Sequence record: OR258281.1 | DNA: 64,000 bases | Direction: 5' to 3' (one strand) | Part shown: positions 4,292 to 63,158 of the stretch, one piece after another | Position numbering within the stretch: the first letter of the stretch is position 1 | Layout of the letters: each line of letters starts with the position of its first letter | Notes under the pieces: generated by a model | Told to the model about the DNA's origin: nothing | Databases searched by the model: none | What the model saw: only the letters and a program-made list of their open reading frames with translations | Position numbers and translations under genes: made by a program

Positions 4292-5179
4292 ATGGATATT
4301 CAAGAATTAAGTACTCAACTTCAGCGTTTTGCTGAAGCTAATGGTTTACAGATGGATGTGCAAGCTGCACTAAATCAGATGGATGCTGGTGACTTTGTTG
4401 AAATCAGTCAGGCAATTGACAATTCCGACAATCGCAGTATCATGCACATTTTACAGAAATACCGTGCAGTTACAAATGAAAATTATAAGTACTTTGAAGG
4501 TACTAAACTTATTGAATCAGAAAGTGTTCAGTTCTTTAATGATATGGGTGTTGAGGAATTAGTTGAAAATTATCGTTCATTTGTTAAAGGTGCTACTTAT
4601 GATCACTCTCATCTAACTCTTAGTCAGATGCGTACCCTAGTTATGGAAGACCTAACTACTTCATTAGGTGCAATTTCAAATAACGATAATCAGAACCAAA
4701 CCACAATGAATCCACAAGCTCAGGCTAAACTAAAACAGGCTGAACTACAGAAACAAGCAGGTAATCCTAATTTTAGTGTAACTGTACCTAATGGTACTGG
4801 TGACAGTATTGAGCCAGTTGTTGGTGTTGATATTGGTTCTTCACCTGAGAAATCTTTGGTGGTTACAAAAGATCCTTCACAGACTAATCAGTTACAGGTA
4901 TTCGGTCTTAATGACGTTGAACCAGTACAGGAAGATTCAATGGATGTACTGGATATGGCGGTACAGGGTGCTGATGATTCATTAAAAGATAATGTTGATG
5001 AGGAATGTATTGATCCTTCACTTACTCATGAACCTGAAATGCAGGATAATCCAGAAGTAGAGATTGTTCAGATTGATGGTGATGACATGGGTGATGCAGT
5101 ACCAGATCTTCAACCAAGTACTGATGAAATTTTAGCACAGATCATGGATTTCTGTTCAAGATTAGATGGGTTAAAATAA
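4292..5179 (+). CDS. acidic hypothetical protein, possibly virion/prohead
   Basis: SD ggag before ATG 4292; D/E-rich; follows late promoter. Confidence 0.7.
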   Translation: MDIQELSTQLQRFAEANGLQMDVQAALNQMDAGDFVEISQAIDNSDNRSIMHILQKYRAVTNENYKYFEGTKLIESESVQFFNDMGVEELVENYRSFVKGATYDHSHLTLSQMRTLVMEDLTTSLGAISNNDNQNQTTMNPQAQAKLKQAELQKQAGNPNFSVTVPNGTGDSIEPVVGVDIGSSPEKSLVVTKDPSQTNQLQVFGLNDVEPVQEDSMDVLDMAVQGADDSLKDNVDEECIDPSLTHEPEMQDNPEVEIVQIDGDDMGDAVPDLQPSTDEILAQIMDFCSRLDGLK

Positions 5180-55907: not shown

Positions 55908-56285
55908 ATGTCTGATACCAATAATAGTCCATATGATGATGATTTTAAGTCATTTCTAAAAGGACTAGATTCTTCATGTATTAGTGGCAAAATCATGATT
56001 GAACCTGGTGTATCTATTACTGCGATGATTTATTTCAGTAATGGTAATACTATTTTTGTTTCTCAAATGATTACCAGAGTAGTAAGTTACAGGAATGCAA
56101 GTAGAGATCTTATTCTGTACACAGAAGAAGGCTTGGACGAGGATGATTTTTTTAATAAAAACATGCAAAGAGAAATCTCATGTATCATCAAGTCCAGTAG
56201 TATCAAAATGATACGTGATAAGATGAAACAGTACTTACAGTCTGAAATAAAAAACCTACAAGACTTAATAGACCTACTATCATGA
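55908..56285 (+). CDS. hypothetical protein, DxxFN family
   Basis: LDEDDFFN. Confidence 0.7.
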   Translation: MSDTNNSPYDDDFKSFLKGLDSSCISGKIMIEPGVSITAMIYFSNGNTIFVSQMITRVVSYRNASRDLILYTEEGLDEDDFFNKNMQREISCIIKSSSIKMIRDKMKQYLQSEIKNLQDLIDLLS

Positions 56286-56665
56286 AAACTACGCAATGTA
56301 TATTAGATAAACTATCTAGTGACGATTTTTCGCTTGAATTGAAAACTAAACCTAAACCTGGAGAAACTGGAGTATATATCTGGTTTTTGATACACTATAA
56401 ACAATATAGTTACCAATCATTTCTTAATTTAGGGAATTCTTTTTGGTTCAAAACGTTAAATGAAGGAACTTTACTTGCTAAAAATGATAATAGTCCATTT
56501 CTTGAGACGGATGAGTACTTTAATCTCAATATCCTAAATCCAATTCCAGACTTCTTACTTAAAGATAATTACTGTAAGATTTATTATCAAATAAAAGATA
56601 GATTAAAAAGCATATATAGGCATAGTTATAGATACGAAATTTTCATGAGAATTAACGGTGAATAG
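56282..56665 (+). CDS. hypothetical protein, DxxFN family
   Basis: ETDEYFNLNILNPIPDFLLKDN. Confidence 0.7.
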   Translation: MKTTQCILDKLSSDDFSLELKTKPKPGETGVYIWFLIHYKQYSYQSFLNLGNSFWFKTLNEGTLLAKNDNSPFLETDEYFNLNILNPIPDFLLKDNYCKIYYQIKDRLKSIYRHSYRYEIFMRINGE

Positions 56666-57005
56666 TACTGATATAGTGATACAAAAAATAATAGATGGAG
56701 ATTATACTATTACCAGAACTTATTCTGGATGTGAAGTAATATATGTTAAATATAATTCAAAAAATAGAGTTGAACTATGGCTAGAACATTCTCTTTCTAT
56801 TACCACATTTAGTTCAAGCTATGCACAGTATCTTAGAACTAAAAAACTACCAGTTGATGGATTAAGTGCTGATGAGTACTTTAATATGTCGTTAGAGTTG
56901 GATGTACCGGATATTGTATTAAAAGATAATATTAAAAAAATTATCAATTCATTTAAAAATAATATTAACCAATCTGCATATAGCATAGAGATAAAATTAT
57001 GTTAA
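56658..57005 (+). CDS. hypothetical protein, DxxFN family
   Basis: SADEYFNMSLELDVPDIVLKDN. Confidence 0.7.
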   Translation: MNSTDIVIQKIIDGDYTITRTYSGCEVIYVKYNSKNRVELWLEHSLSITTFSSSYAQYLRTKKLPVDGLSADEYFNMSLELDVPDIVLKDNIKKIINSFKNNINQSAYSIEIKLC

Positions 57006-57463
57006 GTACAGAAAACCTTTTAGATGTACTTCAAAAAAAGACTTACAACAAAATGATTTGTACTAATTTTATTAGTACTATCAAAAAGTATTTTCGTAAC
57101 AGAAAAGACTTTAAAAGAAAGAAATTCAGTATTTCTTATTCCTATAAAGTTGATAATGAAGATATACGCATTTTCATTTCAGAAACAGGCGTTAAGTATT
57201 CTGTCTTCAATACCAACATTTCTAAATATCAGTCATTCAGTGGCTGTGTACCAAAATACTCATCTCAAGATTTTATGAATCCTGATGAGTATTTTAACAA
57301 AACAATTACTGAAGAATTTCCAGATATTGTTCTGAAGAAAAACCACGATAAAATTGTGGAGTTTTTCAAAACAAGTAAAATACGACATTTCTCCTGCATT
57401 GAAGATGTAGTAGATGAGTCATTCGATATGTTCAACAAATATTTGTACCCTAACTATCTCTAG
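56999..57463 (+). CDS. hypothetical protein, DxxFN family
   Basis: NPDEYFNKTITEEFPDIVLKKN. Confidence 0.7.
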   Translation: MLSTENLLDVLQKKTYNKMICTNFISTIKKYFRNRKDFKRKKFSISYSYKVDNEDIRIFISETGVKYSVFNTNISKYQSFSGCVPKYSSQDFMNPDEYFNKTITEEFPDIVLKKNHDKIVEFFKTSKIRHFSCIEDVVDESFDMFNKYLYPNYL

Positions 57464-57926: not shown

Positions 57927-57943
57927 AAAGCAGTAAATTTTTT

Positions 57944-57972
57944 TGAAACGATTTTGAAAGATGTACTATACT
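57944..57972 (+). promoter_or_regulatory. phage promoter TGAAAC-N17-TATACT for tRNA cluster 1
   Basis: exact motif 11 nt before tRNA-Ser. Confidence 0.8.
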
Positions 57973-57982
57973 ATTAGTACTT

Positions 57983-58070
57983 GGAGAGTTGGGTGAGCGG
58001 CTTAAACCAACAGTCTACTAAATTGTCGCAGAGAAATCTGCCGTGGGTTCGAATCCCACACTCTCCGCCA
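57983..58070 (+). tRNA. tRNA-Ser, anticodon ACT (58017-58019), long variable arm, encoded CCA
   Basis: GGAGAGT/ACTCTCC acceptor, G discriminator, ACAGT-CTACTAA-ATTGT anticodon arm, GCAGA/TCTGC variable arm, GTGGG-TTCGAAT-CCCAC T arm. Confidence 0.9.
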
Positions 58071-58139
58071 CATTTACTTGTCGTCTAATTTTATAATATA
58101 GTAGTAACAACAAAAAGCAGTTACGAGATATTATATAGG

Positions 58140-58193
58140 ATACTACGTTCGAAATGCGTGGGGATGTAGGTGAGATTCCTACCGAGTATGCCA
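58140..58193 (+). ncRNA. truncated tRNA-like element (T arm + acceptor + CCA, no D arm)
   Basis: ATACT/AGTAT acceptor, GTAGG-TGAGATT-CCTAC, ends GCCA. Confidence 0.45.
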
Positions 58194-58199
58194 AATTAA

Positions 58200-58269
58200 A
58201 GCCCATATAGGTAATGTGTTCGGCCTCTAAAACCAAAACACAAGAGTTCAAGTCTCTTATGGGTTACCA
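58200..58269 (+). tRNA. compact/degenerate tRNA-like element with CUA (amber) anticodon loop
   Basis: AGCCCAT/ATGGGTT acceptor + A-CCA; AAGAG-TTCAAGT-CTCTT T arm; loop CT-CTA-AA at 58225-58231; imperfect anticodon stem, short D region. Confidence 0.5.
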
Positions 58270-58289
58270 ATTCTAATGGAGAATAAATT

Positions 58290-58646
58290 ATGAAATAGAC
58301 CAAACCATCTTTAAAAATGTTTCGCTGGGGTAACGATAAGTACTCACATTTAGGTTATAGAATTTTCACACTTGCTTATTGTAAGAGATTCGACTTATAT
58401 CTCTTTAAGTACAATGAAGGTTCGTTTATTCCTAAGCATAAAGATCCCTCTTTTGGGATGCGACACTACCGACTTAATTTAGTACTAAAGAAGCCGGATA
58501 AAGGTGGAGAGTTTATTTGTAATAATAAAATCTTCTCTATATTCAATGATAGAATCATGCTCTTTAGAGCAGATACTGAGTACCATAAGATTACAAAAGT
58601 TGAAAAGGGTACTAGATGGCTACTGAGCCTCGGTATCAGACTATGA
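58290..58646 (+). CDS. 2OG-Fe(II) oxygenase with in-frame TAG at codon 3 (or restart at ATG 58317)
   Basis: KYNEGSFIPKHKD (HxD), GGEF, YHKIT..V..GTRW; SD GGAG 58278-58281, ATG 58290, TAG 58296-58298 in frame with 58317. Confidence 0.75.
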
Positions 58647-58653
58647 GGTACTT

Positions 58654-58878
58654 ATGGCAAAGACTTATAAACCTGAAGTTCACTCCGAATATGAAACGTA
58701 TTGGGGTGAAGAAAGTGTTTACCATTCAGCACGAATGGTCTACGATAAGCACGGAAAATATGTGACTTTAGACTCACATTTGAGTACTGTTAATACTCTA
58801 ATCAGAGTACAGAATAAAAACAGAAAATTCAAAGAAGAAATTGAACGTCTTAAAGAAGAAATTAAGAAACTAAAATGA
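58654..58878 (+). CDS. hypothetical protein
   Basis: 74 aa with SD gagg. Confidence 0.7.
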   Translation: MAKTYKPEVHSEYETYWGEESVYHSARMVYDKHGKYVTLDSHLSTVNTLIRVQNKNRKFKEEIERLKEEIKKLK

Positions 58879-59339
58879 AAAACTCAGTGACTGAATATTT
58901 GAAGTTAATAATGCGTTATCTTAAAGTTGATACGTTTGAAGATATTACTGATTATAATTACCGTCATCAAACTGAATTTAAATTTGAATCAAAAAGAAAG
59001 TTTTTACTACAGAAATATATTTCTTCTAGATATAAAAAAGATGAACCAATTGTACCACTGATTTATAGTTTGTATTATAATGGTTTCTTTATTACCTATA
59101 GAACGGTCACAAAGAACTTAGAATTCAGAATGCATCAATTTCAAAAAGGTTCTATCACAGTAGATATACCACTTGATATCGATTCTAAAGATGAATTCTT
59201 CAATTTTGCACTTGAAAATAACATTGGTTATTTAAAGCTTGAAGACTTAGATATACTCCGTGAAATTGTAGAAATTATTAAAATAACTACTAAAAGTGGT
59301 GGATATTCGGATAAACTTTATGCAAATCAAAACAATTGA
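58875..59339 (+). CDS. hypothetical protein, DxxFN family
   Basis: IDSKDEFFNFALEN; LKLIMRYLK N-terminus. Confidence 0.7.
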   Translation: MKNSVTEYLKLIMRYLKVDTFEDITDYNYRHQTEFKFESKRKFLLQKYISSRYKKDEPIVPLIYSLYYNGFFITYRTVTKNLEFRMHQFQKGSITVDIPLDIDSKDEFFNFALENNIGYLKLEDLDILREIVEIIKITTKSGGYSDKLYANQNN

Positions 59340-59763
59340 AACGCATCTCAGGTTAATGAAGTACTATCTGAAAAATGATAATATGTGTAAACATTCAGAT
59401 GATTCTGACATTACTGATTATCCCACACTTGAGTTTAAATCTGAGAGGATAAGTCTTAGCACTCAAGTATGTAATAGAATTGATAATACATACAGTACTT
59501 TAATTGAAGTACGTTATGGTACTGTAATGATAATGTTCGGTACTGAGTACTATAACACGGGTTATATGTATGTACATAATAAACCTTTTTCGAAGGAAAA
59601 CAGTTTATTAACTGTACCACGTGGTATTGAAACTATTGATGACTTCTTCAATTACATATTAGTACACGATACGCCTTATTTTGAATATGATATAATTCCA
59701 GTACTGAATGAAATTGTTGTTTTGGTAACTGAATTTTTGAAATTGAAGTGTAAGTATTTTTAG
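59320..59763 (+). CDS. hypothetical protein, DxxFN family
   Basis: IETIDDFFNYIL; LRLMKYYLK N-terminus. Confidence 0.7.
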   Translation: MQIKTIETHLRLMKYYLKNDNMCKHSDDSDITDYPTLEFKSERISLSTQVCNRIDNTYSTLIEVRYGTVMIMFGTEYYNTGYMYVHNKPFSKENSLLTVPRGIETIDDFFNYILVHDTPYFEYDIIPVLNEIVVLVTEFLKLKCKYF

Positions 59764-59769
59764 GTACTT

Positions 59770-60192
59770 ATGAAAAAATCTATTGGGTCTTGTCTCAAAT
59801 TAATGTTACATTTTTTGCAAAAAGATGAACTTATTACAGACAATGATAAAAAACATAGTATAAGTTCATACATAGCAGAATTAAAGTCTGAAAGGCTTGA
59901 TGTATTAATATCAGGCCACACCGGTACTATAAGTACAAGTACATTATTGTATGTGCATTACAATGATACAAAAATATATATCAAGAACAGTAAAGTTTAT
60001 ATTGCTACGAAAAAGTTTGGTGACGAAGCCAGAAGTTTTTCTGCACCAATCGAAATTGCGGATAAAGGTGAATTTTTTAATTATGTATTAGAAAATGATG
60101 TTGATTGTCTAAAATTTGAAGACCTTGATACTGTTAGATCTATCCTTGATGTTTTAAGTGAAAAACGTTCAAATTTGTTTAAAAAAACGTGA
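59770..60192 (+). CDS. hypothetical protein, DxxFN family
   Basis: IADKGEFFNYVLEN; LKLMLHFLQ N-terminus. Confidence 0.7.
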   Translation: MKKSIGSCLKLMLHFLQKDELITDNDKKHSISSYIAELKSERLDVLISGHTGTISTSTLLYVHYNDTKIYIKNSKVYIATKKFGDEARSFSAPIEIADKGEFFNYVLENDVDCLKFEDLDTVRSILDVLSEKRSNLFKKT

Positions 60193-62747: not shown

Positions 62748-63158
62748 ATGGATAAACCACAGTACTCTTGTTACATAGTACTCCGAAAAGACTTAGATAT
62801 GCCTGTTGGTAAGTTCTCTGCACAAGTAGGACACGCAGTAGGTAAAATCTTTGAGTACTACATGACACAAAAAGAACATCACCGAAATACCGATGATGAA
62901 GAACTTCTTTCACGTGTCAGTACTTTTGAGAACTGGAACAAAGAAGGTGGCGGTCACGGTGGTAAGAAAGTAATTCTTAAAGCCGATACTGAACTTAAAC
63001 TTGAAAATCTTCGTAAGAAACTTAACGAAGACAATGTTAAGTACTTCGATATTTTCGATTACGGATATAACTTCTTTGACGGTTTAACTTGTACTGGATT
63101 AGTACTTTATCCACGTCAGGAAGAACTAAAATACATTAAACGCTTACAGTGTTGGTGA
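62748..63158 (+). CDS. peptidyl-tRNA hydrolase type 2 (Pth2)
   Basis: YIVLRKDLDMPVGKFSAQVGHA, W..EG...KKVILKA, D.G....T..GL..YP. Confidence 0.85.
   Translation: MDKPQYSCYIVLRKDLDMPVGKFSAQVGHAVGKIFEYYMTQKEHHRNTDDEELLSRVSTFENWNKEGGGHGGKKVILKADTELKLENLRKKLNEDNVKYFDIFDYGYNFFDGLTCTGLVLYPRQEELKYIKRLQCW

Follow-up and report, generated by a model that had tools for sequence, protein, structure and literature searches.

A giant Xanthomonas phage, XaC1, carries a gene for a stripped-down tRNA with the anticodon CUA, predicted to read the stop codon UAG, next to a small oxygenase-like gene whose complete reading frame can be translated only if an early in-frame TAG is read through. The same pair recurs in many unrelated phages, and comparison of the orthologous loci strongly supports its interpretation as a self-contained cassette of a suppressor tRNA and an amber-gated gene, operating without genome-wide recoding (rough probability 0.8), although expression and charging of the tRNA and actual decoding of the TAG remain inferred. 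The tRNA has no D arm and is apparently the first armless tRNA found outside mitochondria.

The analyzed window comprised 64,000 nt of the XaC1 genome (accession no. OR258281.1; position 248001–312000). The following features were identified (positions are those of the window):

57943..57972 (+): sigma-70-like promoter candidate (TTGAAA-18-TATACT) upstream of the tRNA-Ser / tRNA(CUA) / oxygenase unit
57983..58070 (+): tRNA-Ser with the unusual anticodon ACU
58200..58269 (+): D-armless putative amber-suppressor tRNA gene, anticodon CUA (acceptor 58200–58206 / 58259–58265; linker 58207–58215, with the conserved GG at 58210–58211; long anticodon arm 58216–58224 / 58232–58241; loop 58225–58231 with anticodon 58227–58229; T arm 58242–58258; discriminator A 58266; CCA 58267–58269)
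58278..58281 (+): Shine-Dalgarno (SD) sequence GGAG, 9 nt before ATG 58291
58291..58299 (+): the gate, ATG AAA TAG, with the in-frame amber codon at 58297–58299 followed by A
58300..58316 (+): coding segment after the TAG (T-K-P-S-L-K), in frame with the oxygenase
58317..58646 (+): annotated XaC1_459, a 109-aa minimal cupin / Fe(II)-2OG-oxygenase-like protein; the full gated ORF is 58291–58646

The sequence features listed in the initial annotation were all confirmed. The acceptor strands AGCCCAT and ATGGGTT form 7 bp (one G-U), the T arm has the sequence AAGAG / TTCAAGT / CTCTT, and the loop CTCTAAA contains the CTA anticodon. The frame opened by ATG 58291, 21 nt downstream of the tRNA, continues in phase to ATG 58317 and to the stop codon at 58644–58646. 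However, the “short D region” of the initial annotation is in fact a 9-nt single-stranded linker, and the would-be variable region pairs with the 3′ part of the former D region. The resulting anticodon arm is therefore about 9 pairs long, with a bulge and two C-A mismatches. The 12-bp acceptor/T-arm stack, a canonical T loop, A73, U33, a purine at position 37 and an encoded CCA are retained.

The element was not called by ARAGORN with default settings. It appeared at -ps85 and in mitochondrial mode, as a “D-loop” tRNA(cta), but since about 25 relaxed calls arise by chance per random 64 kb at -ps80, this evidence alone is weak. The Rfam tRNA model (RF00005) gave 19.3 bits, below its gathering score of 29. 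Of the armless relatives, only 1 of 13 passed this threshold, whereas all 5 cloverleaf-type suppressors did; standard tools miss 12 of the 13 armless elements found here. A covariance model (R1) scored the XaC1 element at 78.6 bits. The decisive test employed an independent model (R2), built only from armless tRNA(CUA) genes of other phages, with XaC1 and its close relatives left out. This model identified 58200–58269 as the best hit in the whole 348,967-bp genome (59.8 bits, E 1.4e-15), the next hits being ordinary tRNAs at 27 bits or less.

The armless structure is supported by covariation: 89% of cells are paired, compared to 58.5% when shuffled and 31–46% when slid, and 18 of 20 pairs change on both sides (7 of 8 pairs in the helix of the anticodon arm). 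The T-arm pairs are 100% paired across the family, and a 7–9 nt unpaired linker replaces the D arm. Minimum-free-energy folds gave the same three helices, although the XaC1 fold is only modestly better than that of shuffled sequence (z -1.8). In the closest relatives (clade loci L010, L022 and L024) the acceptor stem is irregular, with the top three pairs mismatched unless one U is bulged.

Comparative analysis revealed that all 23 distinct members of this oxygenase clade contain an in-frame TAG, never TAA or TGA, at codons 2–7. TAG is the first upstream in-frame stop in 28 of 29 clade loci. These sequences come from soil, freshwater and marine metagenomes and from three independently sequenced cultured phages, namely XaC1 and the Vibrio phages nt-1 and CZ01, both of which grow on Vibrio natriegens. 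In the relatives, as in XaC1, an ATG preceded by an SD-like motif lies 1–6 codons before the TAG. The base following the gate TAG is a purine in 23 of 23 sequences (A in 21, G in 2), while the 41 true TAG terminators of XaC1 are followed by T in 19 cases and by A in 8. A database protein that appeared to read straight through this position (…KLQTNP…) is encoded by DNA with a TAG at the site; the “Q” came from the source's translation and is not informative on the inserted amino acid.

The segment following the TAG shows coding constraint. The peptide (T/I)x(P/S)(T/S)L(K/R) is conserved through synonymous codon changes, with entropy at codon positions 1/2/3 of 0.96/0.31/1.24, like that of the downstream coding sequence. 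The codon matching Met 58317 of XaC1 is ATG in only 8 and TTG in 2 of the 23 sequences, and is a non-start codon in 13. Two clade loci (L011 and L012) have no in-frame ATG, GTG or TTG between the TAG and that position, and in nt-1 no start codon follows the TAG before residue 26. There is no GGAG/GAGG/AGGA before ATG 58317 in XaC1, but the missing SD, noted in the initial annotation, is weak evidence on its own, since only 8 of 28 neighbouring annotated starts have a strict SD.

A tRNA(CUA) was found within 600 nt of the gene in 20 of the 23 sequences (15 armless, 5 cloverleaf), upstream or downstream, which implies action in trans. Its loop is always (C/U)UCUAAA. Interestingly, the tRNAs upstream of the nt-1 gene have anticodons UAA and CAA, but an unannotated CUA tRNA lies immediately downstream. 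Two loci (L027 and L028) showed no tRNA(CUA) in the 0.4–3 kb of sequence examined. In XaC1-like phages the conserved upstream neighbour of the suppressor is tRNA-Ser(ACU) (Rfam, 52.5 bits in XaC1), and the same CTACTAA loop, with compensatory anticodon-stem changes, is present in L010, L022 and L024. The promoter candidate upstream of this unit rests on a consensus match only (10 of 12 positions), and no terminator-like site lies on the + strand between it and the oxygenase gene. Part (58128–58196) of the 129-nt spacer between tRNA-Ser and the suppressor was folded as a possible second degenerate tRNA, but it folds no better than shuffled sequence.

The gated genes form one clade (support 100/99), and their nearest ungated phage homologs (FLC9, RP12, Vp_R1) have ordinary starts and no tRNAs nearby. 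The 109-aa part following the TAG, which alone was searched and folded, scored below the cut-offs for PF13640 (24.7 bits; cut-off 27) and PF05118 (19.4 bits; cut-off 22.6). However, the residues H41-x-D43, H90 and R100, corresponding to the HxD...H metal triad and a basic residue for 2OG, are at least 90% conserved. The AF2 model (pLDDT 92) is all-beta, and Foldseek returned cupins and the AspH oxygenase domain (TM 0.61–0.73; 0.73 for AspH), suggesting a cupin fold. The protein belongs to phrog_13746 (unknown function), while a sequence search of the PDB and a search of NCBIfam gave no hits. The oxygenase ORF is annotated too short in all three cultured phage records (XaC1_459 by nine codons; nt-1 ORF180 and CZ01_185 truncated), and each record lacks a tRNA gene.

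Taken together, these data are best explained by a two-part module residing in phage tRNA gene clusters. It is proposed that the tRNA is probably co-transcribed with tRNA-Ser(ACU) and the oxygenase mRNA, whose SD begins 9 nt after the CCA, and that it is then cut out, charged by a host synthetase and used to insert an amino acid at UAG (codon 3) in competition with RF1, so that ribosomes that started at ATG 58291 continue into the oxygenase. Without a working suppressor only Met-Lys would be made from this start, although XaC1 could additionally initiate at Met 58317, which may allow expression without the tRNA and which most relatives cannot do. Oxygenase output would therefore depend on, and report, the activity of the phage's own suppressor, the gate behaving as a translational AND gate, or feed-forward delay, within the tRNA cluster; this regulatory purpose is inferred. 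XaC1 has no full aminoacyl-tRNA synthetase by annotation (the only “tRNA ligase” entry is a 90-aa AlaRS-like fragment), and thus charging must rely on the host. That such a fold can function in bacteria is indicated by the finding that E. coli HisRS, EF-Tu and ribosomes accept an engineered D-armless tRNA, although this tRNA was unstable until PNPase was mutated (PMC11551756). An active suppressor would also read through roughly 41–79 phage genes ending in TAG, and no excess of back-up stops was found after these genes.

Other explanations appear unlikely. The initial annotation considered it equally possible that the element is a decayed tRNA next to a recent nonsense mutation or sequencing error. 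Its sub-threshold scores and mismatched anticodon arm might suggest this, but conservation of the TAG and the CUA tRNA, the compensatory changes maintaining the helices and the single old clade of gated genes refute this view. Genome-wide reassignment of TAG is also very improbable. The genome is indeed AT-rich (35% GC) and TAG is its rarest stop, resembling the described precursors of recoded phages (10.1101/2021.08.26.457843). Nevertheless, of 724 open frames of at least 80 codons, 404 end in TAA, 241 in TGA and 79 in TAG, and TAG terminates 41 of 510 frames of at least 100 codons. The gate pattern occurs once for TAG, twice for TAA and never for TGA. In-frame adjacent long frames separated by TAG number 8, mostly on the non-coding strand, compared to 47 for TAA and 15 for TGA, and the GenBank annotation in standard code is dense.

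SD-ATG-AAA-TAG could alternatively be a two-codon leader ORF, apparently similar in architecture to the lambda bar minigenes, with independent initiation at ATG 58317 and the tRNA-like element serving only as an RNA-processing or stability signal at the 5′ end of the message. In agreement with this, GenBank annotates the gene from ATG 58317, SD-less starts are common in this genome (20 of 28 nearby) and the phage encodes a peptidyl-tRNA hydrolase. This is improbable, however, given the non-start codons in 13 of 23 relatives, the coding constraint after the TAG, the exclusive use of TAG (a leader ORF could use any stop) and the fact that the tRNA can lie 580 nt upstream or downstream of the gene. 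It is somewhat less unlikely, though still doubtful, that the TAG is passed by another route, such as weak RF1 termination at very early codons (termination on very short nascent chains may be inefficient) with near-cognate host tRNAs, or ribosome hopping, and that the CUA RNA is a decoy for host anticodon nucleases, a substrate of the oxygenase or a processing punctuation mark. AAA TAG ACC AAA in XaC1 offers a possible take-off and landing pair, and the constant location of the gene inside tRNA clusters suggests a tRNA-related substrate. However, matching codons are absent in most relatives (e.g. CAT TAG ATT ACT in clade locus L008 and ATG TAG ACT CAA in nt-1), the only strictly invariant part of the RNA is a textbook amber-suppressor loop complementary to the one codon that is invariant in the gene, and both structural types of tRNA keep CUA.

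A further, tentative possibility is that phages have evolved a family of truly armless tRNAs that work in bacterial cytoplasmic translation, the first natural non-cloverleaf tRNAs outside mitochondria, with a single tRNA-cluster gene as their only conserved client. The oxygenase-like product may in turn act on tRNA or on the translation or termination machinery. In that case the early UAG would be a sensor in a feedback loop setting the level of stop-codon readthrough in the infected cell, an RF2-like control circuit built from a tRNA and a possible stepping stone to full code reassignment.

The published literature states that natural armless tRNAs are known only from mitochondria and that all known bacterial tRNAs are cloverleaves (PMC11551756, PMC7609411); a conserved, covarying family of D-armless tRNA(CUA) genes in phages of Xanthomonas, Vibrio and many uncultured hosts would overturn this view. 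It would also explain why suppressor tRNAs are often missing from phage annotations, and would provide a simple model of how stop-codon reassignment begins, with one tRNA and one client gene, as well as a candidate scaffold for orthogonal translation. No description of this cassette or of armless phage tRNAs was found in a non-exhaustive search of the literature.

D-armless mitochondrial tRNAs, such as mt-tRNA-Ser(AGY), and the engineered “mini HisT” of E. coli (PMC11551756, PMC7609411) similarly lack a D stem, have a short single-stranded connector and retain the T arm. The phage elements differ in that the anticodon arm is lengthened to about 9 pairs by recruiting the variable region, the canonical T loop and a GG motif are kept, and the anticodon is a stop-codon reader; the structural similarity does not imply common descent with mitochondrial tRNAs. 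Like stop-codon-recoded (“code 15”) phages (10.1101/2021.08.26.457843, PMC9523058, PMC10879173), XaC1 carries its own UAG suppressor tRNA and an in-frame TAG that must be decoded, in an AT-rich genome in which TAG is the rarest stop and in a standard-code host. Here, however, the TAG is present in one gene, not in a block of late genes, it always lies in the first seven codons, the gene and tRNA are physically linked and inherited together as one clade, and TAG remains an ordinary terminator elsewhere. As in prfB (RF2), a conserved early stop makes protein yield depend on how efficiently it is decoded, but no frameshift is involved, passage needs a dedicated tRNA instead of a +1 slip, and the product is oxygenase-like, with any feedback loop unproven. 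Read without suppression, the XaC1 gate is exactly a lambda bar-type minigene (fMet-Lys-stop), but in the relatives the pre-TAG length varies from 1 to 6 codons and the frame continues into a conserved protein, which bar minigenes do not have.

The resemblance to tRNA-Pyl, noted in the initial annotation and reflected in the ARAGORN label, is limited to the CUA anticodon and compactness, and kinship is rejected. tRNA-Pyl has a D stem with a small loop, a 3-nt variable loop and a 6-bp anticodon stem, lacks the GG and T-psi-C motifs and requires PylRS and the pylBCD genes, whereas the XaC1 element contains the GG and the TTCAAGT loop, has no D stem or variable loop, and no pylS or pylBCD appears among the 550 annotated XaC1 genes (annotation being the only evidence examined). 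Finally, allo-tRNAs with 8/4 or 9/3 acceptor/T stems (PMC5389517) are also non-canonical tRNAs found by metagenomics, sometimes with stop-codon anticodons, and the minimum-free-energy fold of the XaC1 element can be drawn as 8/4. However, allo-tRNAs keep a D arm and have a long variable arm, and relatives of the XaC1 element are clearly 7/5.

The analyzed window derives from Xanthomonas phage XaC1 (accession no. OR258281.1; 100% identity), a 348,967-bp jumbo myovirus of X. vesicatoria, with window position 1 corresponding to position 248001 of the record. The published description of this phage lists eight tRNAs and does not mention a suppressor (PMC11273794), while in GenBank the oxygenase gene (XaC1_459) is annotated from the second ATG, at window position 58317. 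Inspection of the nucleotide sequence confirmed the presence of all the features described in the initial annotation:

58200–58206 with 58259–58265, a 7-bp acceptor stem
58225–58231, the loop CTCTAAA
58242–58258, a canonical T arm
58266, discriminator A, followed by an encoded CCA
58278–58281, GGAG
58291–58299, ATG-AAA-TAG, in frame with the ORF that ends at 58646

The tRNA-like element was not detected by ARAGORN with default settings, and the Rfam tRNA model gave a score of 19.3 bits, below the 29-bit threshold. ARAGORN identified it only with relaxed settings or in mitochondrial mode, as a D-loop-replacement tRNA(cta). Since such relaxed calls are frequent in random sequence, evidence from this single sequence cannot settle the matter, and a comparative approach was applied.

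Homologs of the 109-aa protein were traced to their contigs, to IMG/VR, to JGI/ENA metagenomes and to cultured phages. In every member of the closest clade, an ATG with an SD-like motif is followed, after 0–5 sense codons, by TAG, and the frame then continues into a conserved peptide, (T/I)x(P/S)(T/S)L(K/R), and the (L/M)(F/W)(R/K)WG core. The stop codon is TAG in 28 of 29 loci and never TAA or TGA; the exception, locus L030, appears to be frameshifted. After the removal of duplicates, 23 distinct sequences remained, all of which carry TAG. One database protein seemed to read through this position with Q, but its DNA contains TAG. The cultured Vibrio phages nt-1 and CZ01, which were isolated independently, both read ATG TAG ACT CAA AAA CCA…, and in both records the gene is annotated as a truncated ORF (ORF180 and CZ01_185, respectively), about 26 codons too short, because the true start is ATG-TAG.

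At the position corresponding to Met 58317 of XaC1, only 8 of the sequences have ATG and 2 have TTG, while the other 13 have CTC, CTT, CTG, TTA, AGA or ACC. Translation cannot begin there in most members of the clade. The four codons preceding this position vary mostly at the third base (entropy 0.96/0.31/1.24 for codon positions 1/2/3), which matches the downstream coding region (0.56/0.50/1.25). The base following the TAG is A in 21 and G in 2 of the 23 sequences, whereas the genuine TAG terminators of XaC1 are followed by T in 19 and A in 8 of 41 cases. A 3′ purine, especially A, would be expected to favor amber suppression, and UAG-U to favor termination.

A tRNA with a (C/U)UCUAAA loop is located directly upstream of the gate (the start codon and in-frame TAG) in most loci. 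A covariance model built from ten armless examples (R1) revealed further copies, one about 580 nt upstream of the gene in the phage group represented by loci L002 and L005, and others immediately downstream of the gene in nt-1, CZ01 and loci L032 and L039. The copies in nt-1 (locus L018, 1813–1880; accession no. HQ317393.2, minus strand, about 90462–90529) and CZ01 (locus L110, 1013–1080; accession no. PV740454.1) are unannotated armless tRNA(CUA) genes. In total, 20 of the 23 distinct sequences have a tRNA(CUA) within 600 nt (15 armless and 5 ordinary cloverleaves); of the remainder, L109 is too short to judge, and L027 and L028 show none within the 0.4–3 kb examined. The variable position of the tRNA, upstream or downstream, argues for its action in trans. 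The oxygenase gene is always located within a phage tRNA cluster, of up to 27 tRNAs in nt-1. The cluster of L032 (Ga0222646_100003, 210 kb), which holds a gated oxygenase and an armless tRNA(CUA), also contains a tRNA with anticodon UUA, an ochre-suppressor type (4963–5037; Rfam 47.5 bits), and this phage may read through more than one stop codon.

Minimum-free-energy folding of the elements of XaC1, L012, L013 and L040 gave the same three helices: the acceptor stem, followed by an unpaired 7–9 nt linker, a long anticodon arm of 8–9 pairs with a bulge or internal loop, and then the T arm, with no variable loop between them. In the alignment of ten sequences, 89% of cells form standard pairs, compared to 58.5% in shuffled alignments (0 of 500 reached the observed value) and 31–46% when the partners were slid, and 18 of 20 pairs show changes on both sides. 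The invariant features are a GG in the linker, the anticodon loop, G53 and the T-loop core, and A73. It is inferred that the long arm is built from the former 3′ strand of the D stem paired with the former variable region, which would preserve the length of the normal D-stem plus anticodon-stem stack. The GG could still dock on the T loop, so an L-like shape is plausible.

To test the model independently of XaC1, a second covariance model (R2) was built from nine armless tRNAs, with XaC1 and its close relatives left out. This model scored 58200–58269 at 59.8 bits (E 1.4e-15), the only such hit in all 348,967 bp, while ordinary tRNAs reached at most 27 bits. Standard tools miss this class: only 1 of 13 elements reaches the Rfam threshold, and default ARAGORN calls only L013/L014. 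The element that passes is that of L005 (2352–2420; compare L002, 2351–2420), in whose phage group two small genes separate the suppressor from the oxygenase gene. It can alternatively form a 3–4 bp mini D stem (GCUC-GGUA-GAGC) and may be an intermediate between the cloverleaf and armless forms.

In L011 (1911–1978) and L012 (3860–3927) the T loop is AUCGUGU in place of UUCRANU, with positions 54 and 58 swapped from T/A to A/U, which is consistent with a maintained reverse-Hoogsteen pair and may represent a compensated T-loop pair. In the closest relatives of XaC1 (L010, 222–290; L022, 2884–2952; L024, 116–184), the top three acceptor-stem pairs are mismatched unless a U on the 3′ strand is bulged (GCCCGU / ACGG-U-GC). 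This is shared by all three, and reflects either an unusual acceptor stem or a different 5′ end.

The suppressor of XaC1 is preceded by the following features:

57943–57972, promoter-like site
57983–58070, tRNA-Ser with anticodon ACU
58071–58199, 129 nt between tRNA-Ser and the suppressor
58073–58102, second promoter-like site, within these 129 nt

The tRNA-Ser (loop CUACUAA) has an unmodified-looking A34, which is very unusual for bacteria and phages. The loop is identical in four phages (XaC1; L010, 128–215; L022, ~2789–2875; L024, ~19–106), while the anticodon stem changes in a compensatory way (ACAGT/ATTGT, AACGC/GCGTT, AATGC/GCATT, CAGC/GCTG), so it appears to be under selection. This tRNA may be specialized for AGU in an AT-rich phage, and, if A34 were deaminated, it could also read AGA. 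In L010, L022 and L024 only 4–6 nt separate the two tRNAs. The longer insert of XaC1 also contains a weak hairpin with a …GCCA tail, but it does not fold better than shuffled sequence. The cassette is flanked by two runs of three tandem paralogous small genes (56282–57463 and 58875–60192), one sharing a DEYFN…PD(F/I)(V/L)LK motif and the other (D/E)(E/D)FFN(F/Y)…LE(N/H)D.

Analysis of the whole XaC1 genome (in seven pieces) showed that open frames of at least 80 codons end in TAA 404, TGA 241 and TAG 79 times. The gate pattern, defined as an SD-ATG within 10 codons before a stop that is followed by at least 80 open codons, occurs once for TAG (the oxygenase gene), twice for TAA and never for TGA. 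Long in-frame neighbors separated by TAG number 8, mostly on the non-coding strand, against 47 for TAA and 15 for TGA. Therefore, XaC1 uses the standard code and the suppressor has one evident client. One further junction was noted at 59761–59772, where XaC1_462 ends in TAG and the ATG of the next gene (59770), a paralog, lies in the same frame two codons later, so that an active suppressor would fuse the two. However, the base following this TAG is G, and L022 shows no matching TAG junction among its downstream ORFs, so this is probably due to chance. Among its annotated genes, XaC1 encodes no complete aminoacyl-tRNA synthetase, although it does encode a CCA-adding enzyme, a Thg1-like enzyme, RNA ligases, a polynucleotide kinase and a peptidyl-tRNA hydrolase.

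In a maximum-likelihood tree of 41 homologs, the 22 gated genes form one clade with support 100/99. This clade nests among ungated phage homologs (FLC9, RP12, Vp_R1 and IMG/VR contigs) and a bacterial group, all of which have ordinary Met starts; the three cultured ungated phages also have no tRNA within the 1.5-kb flanks examined. The loci with cloverleaf-type suppressors form a subclade nested among loci with armless ones. It is inferred from this topology that the armless form looks ancestral to the sampled clade, and that the cloverleaf form looks like a later replacement.

Pfam analysis of the protein gave sub-threshold matches to 2OG-FeII_Oxy_3 and Asp_Arg_Hydrox, and residues H41, D43, H90 and R100 are conserved. 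AlphaFold produced a confident all-beta model (pLDDT 92), whose best structural matches are minimal cupins and the oxygenase domain of aspartyl/asparaginyl beta-hydroxylase (TM up to 0.73). The corresponding PHROG family has no known function. The constant residence of the gene in tRNA clusters makes a tRNA- or translation-related substrate an attractive, but unsupported, guess.

Since no terminator-like site separates the tRNAs from the oxygenase gene on the + strand, their co-transcription, possibly from the promoter-like site preceding tRNA-Ser(ACU), is likely. In the mechanism proposed, excision of the tRNA would leave an mRNA that begins just upstream of the SD, ribosomes start at ATG 58291, and at UAG (codon 3) the charged suppressor competes with RF1. 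Success yields the 118-residue protein, and failure only Met-Lys. The location of the stop at codons 2–7 means that failure costs almost nothing and leaves no truncated protein. Output should scale with both the mRNA and the tRNA, giving a delay and a threshold. When unsuppressed, SD-AUG-AAA-UAG (AUG-AAA-UAG at 58291–58299) is a two-codon minigene of the lambda bar type; such minigenes probably promote peptidyl-tRNA drop-off, and since the phage encodes its peptidyl-tRNA hydrolase (XaC1_471; 62748–63158) about 4.5 kb downstream, there may be a functional link. On this computational evidence, a probability of about 0.8 may be assigned to the reading that the adjacent tRNA decodes the TAG and thereby gates the gene, with much less confidence in any particular purpose, whether timer, sensor of tRNA-cluster function, or feedback on readthrough.

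The finding is real, is not an artefact, and is considerably broader than could be seen in the initial annotation. It represents, on wholly computational grounds, a conserved, widely distributed tRNA-plus-gated-gene module, whose tRNA is, in most lineages, of a structural type not previously reported outside mitochondria. No paper describing this cassette was found in the literature searched. The likeness to tRNA-Pyl, suggested in the initial annotation by the compact form of the element, fails on the defining features of that tRNA. Armless tRNAs are established in mitochondria; a 2024 study states that natural armless tRNAs exist exclusively there, and shows that E. coli can use an engineered one (PMC11551756), while a 2020 review of non-canonical tRNAs mentions no phage case. 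Phage suppressor tRNAs and in-frame stops are, in turn, established in recoded gut phages (10.1101/2021.08.26.457843; PMC9523058), but there many late genes are affected and the stop is largely abandoned as a terminator.
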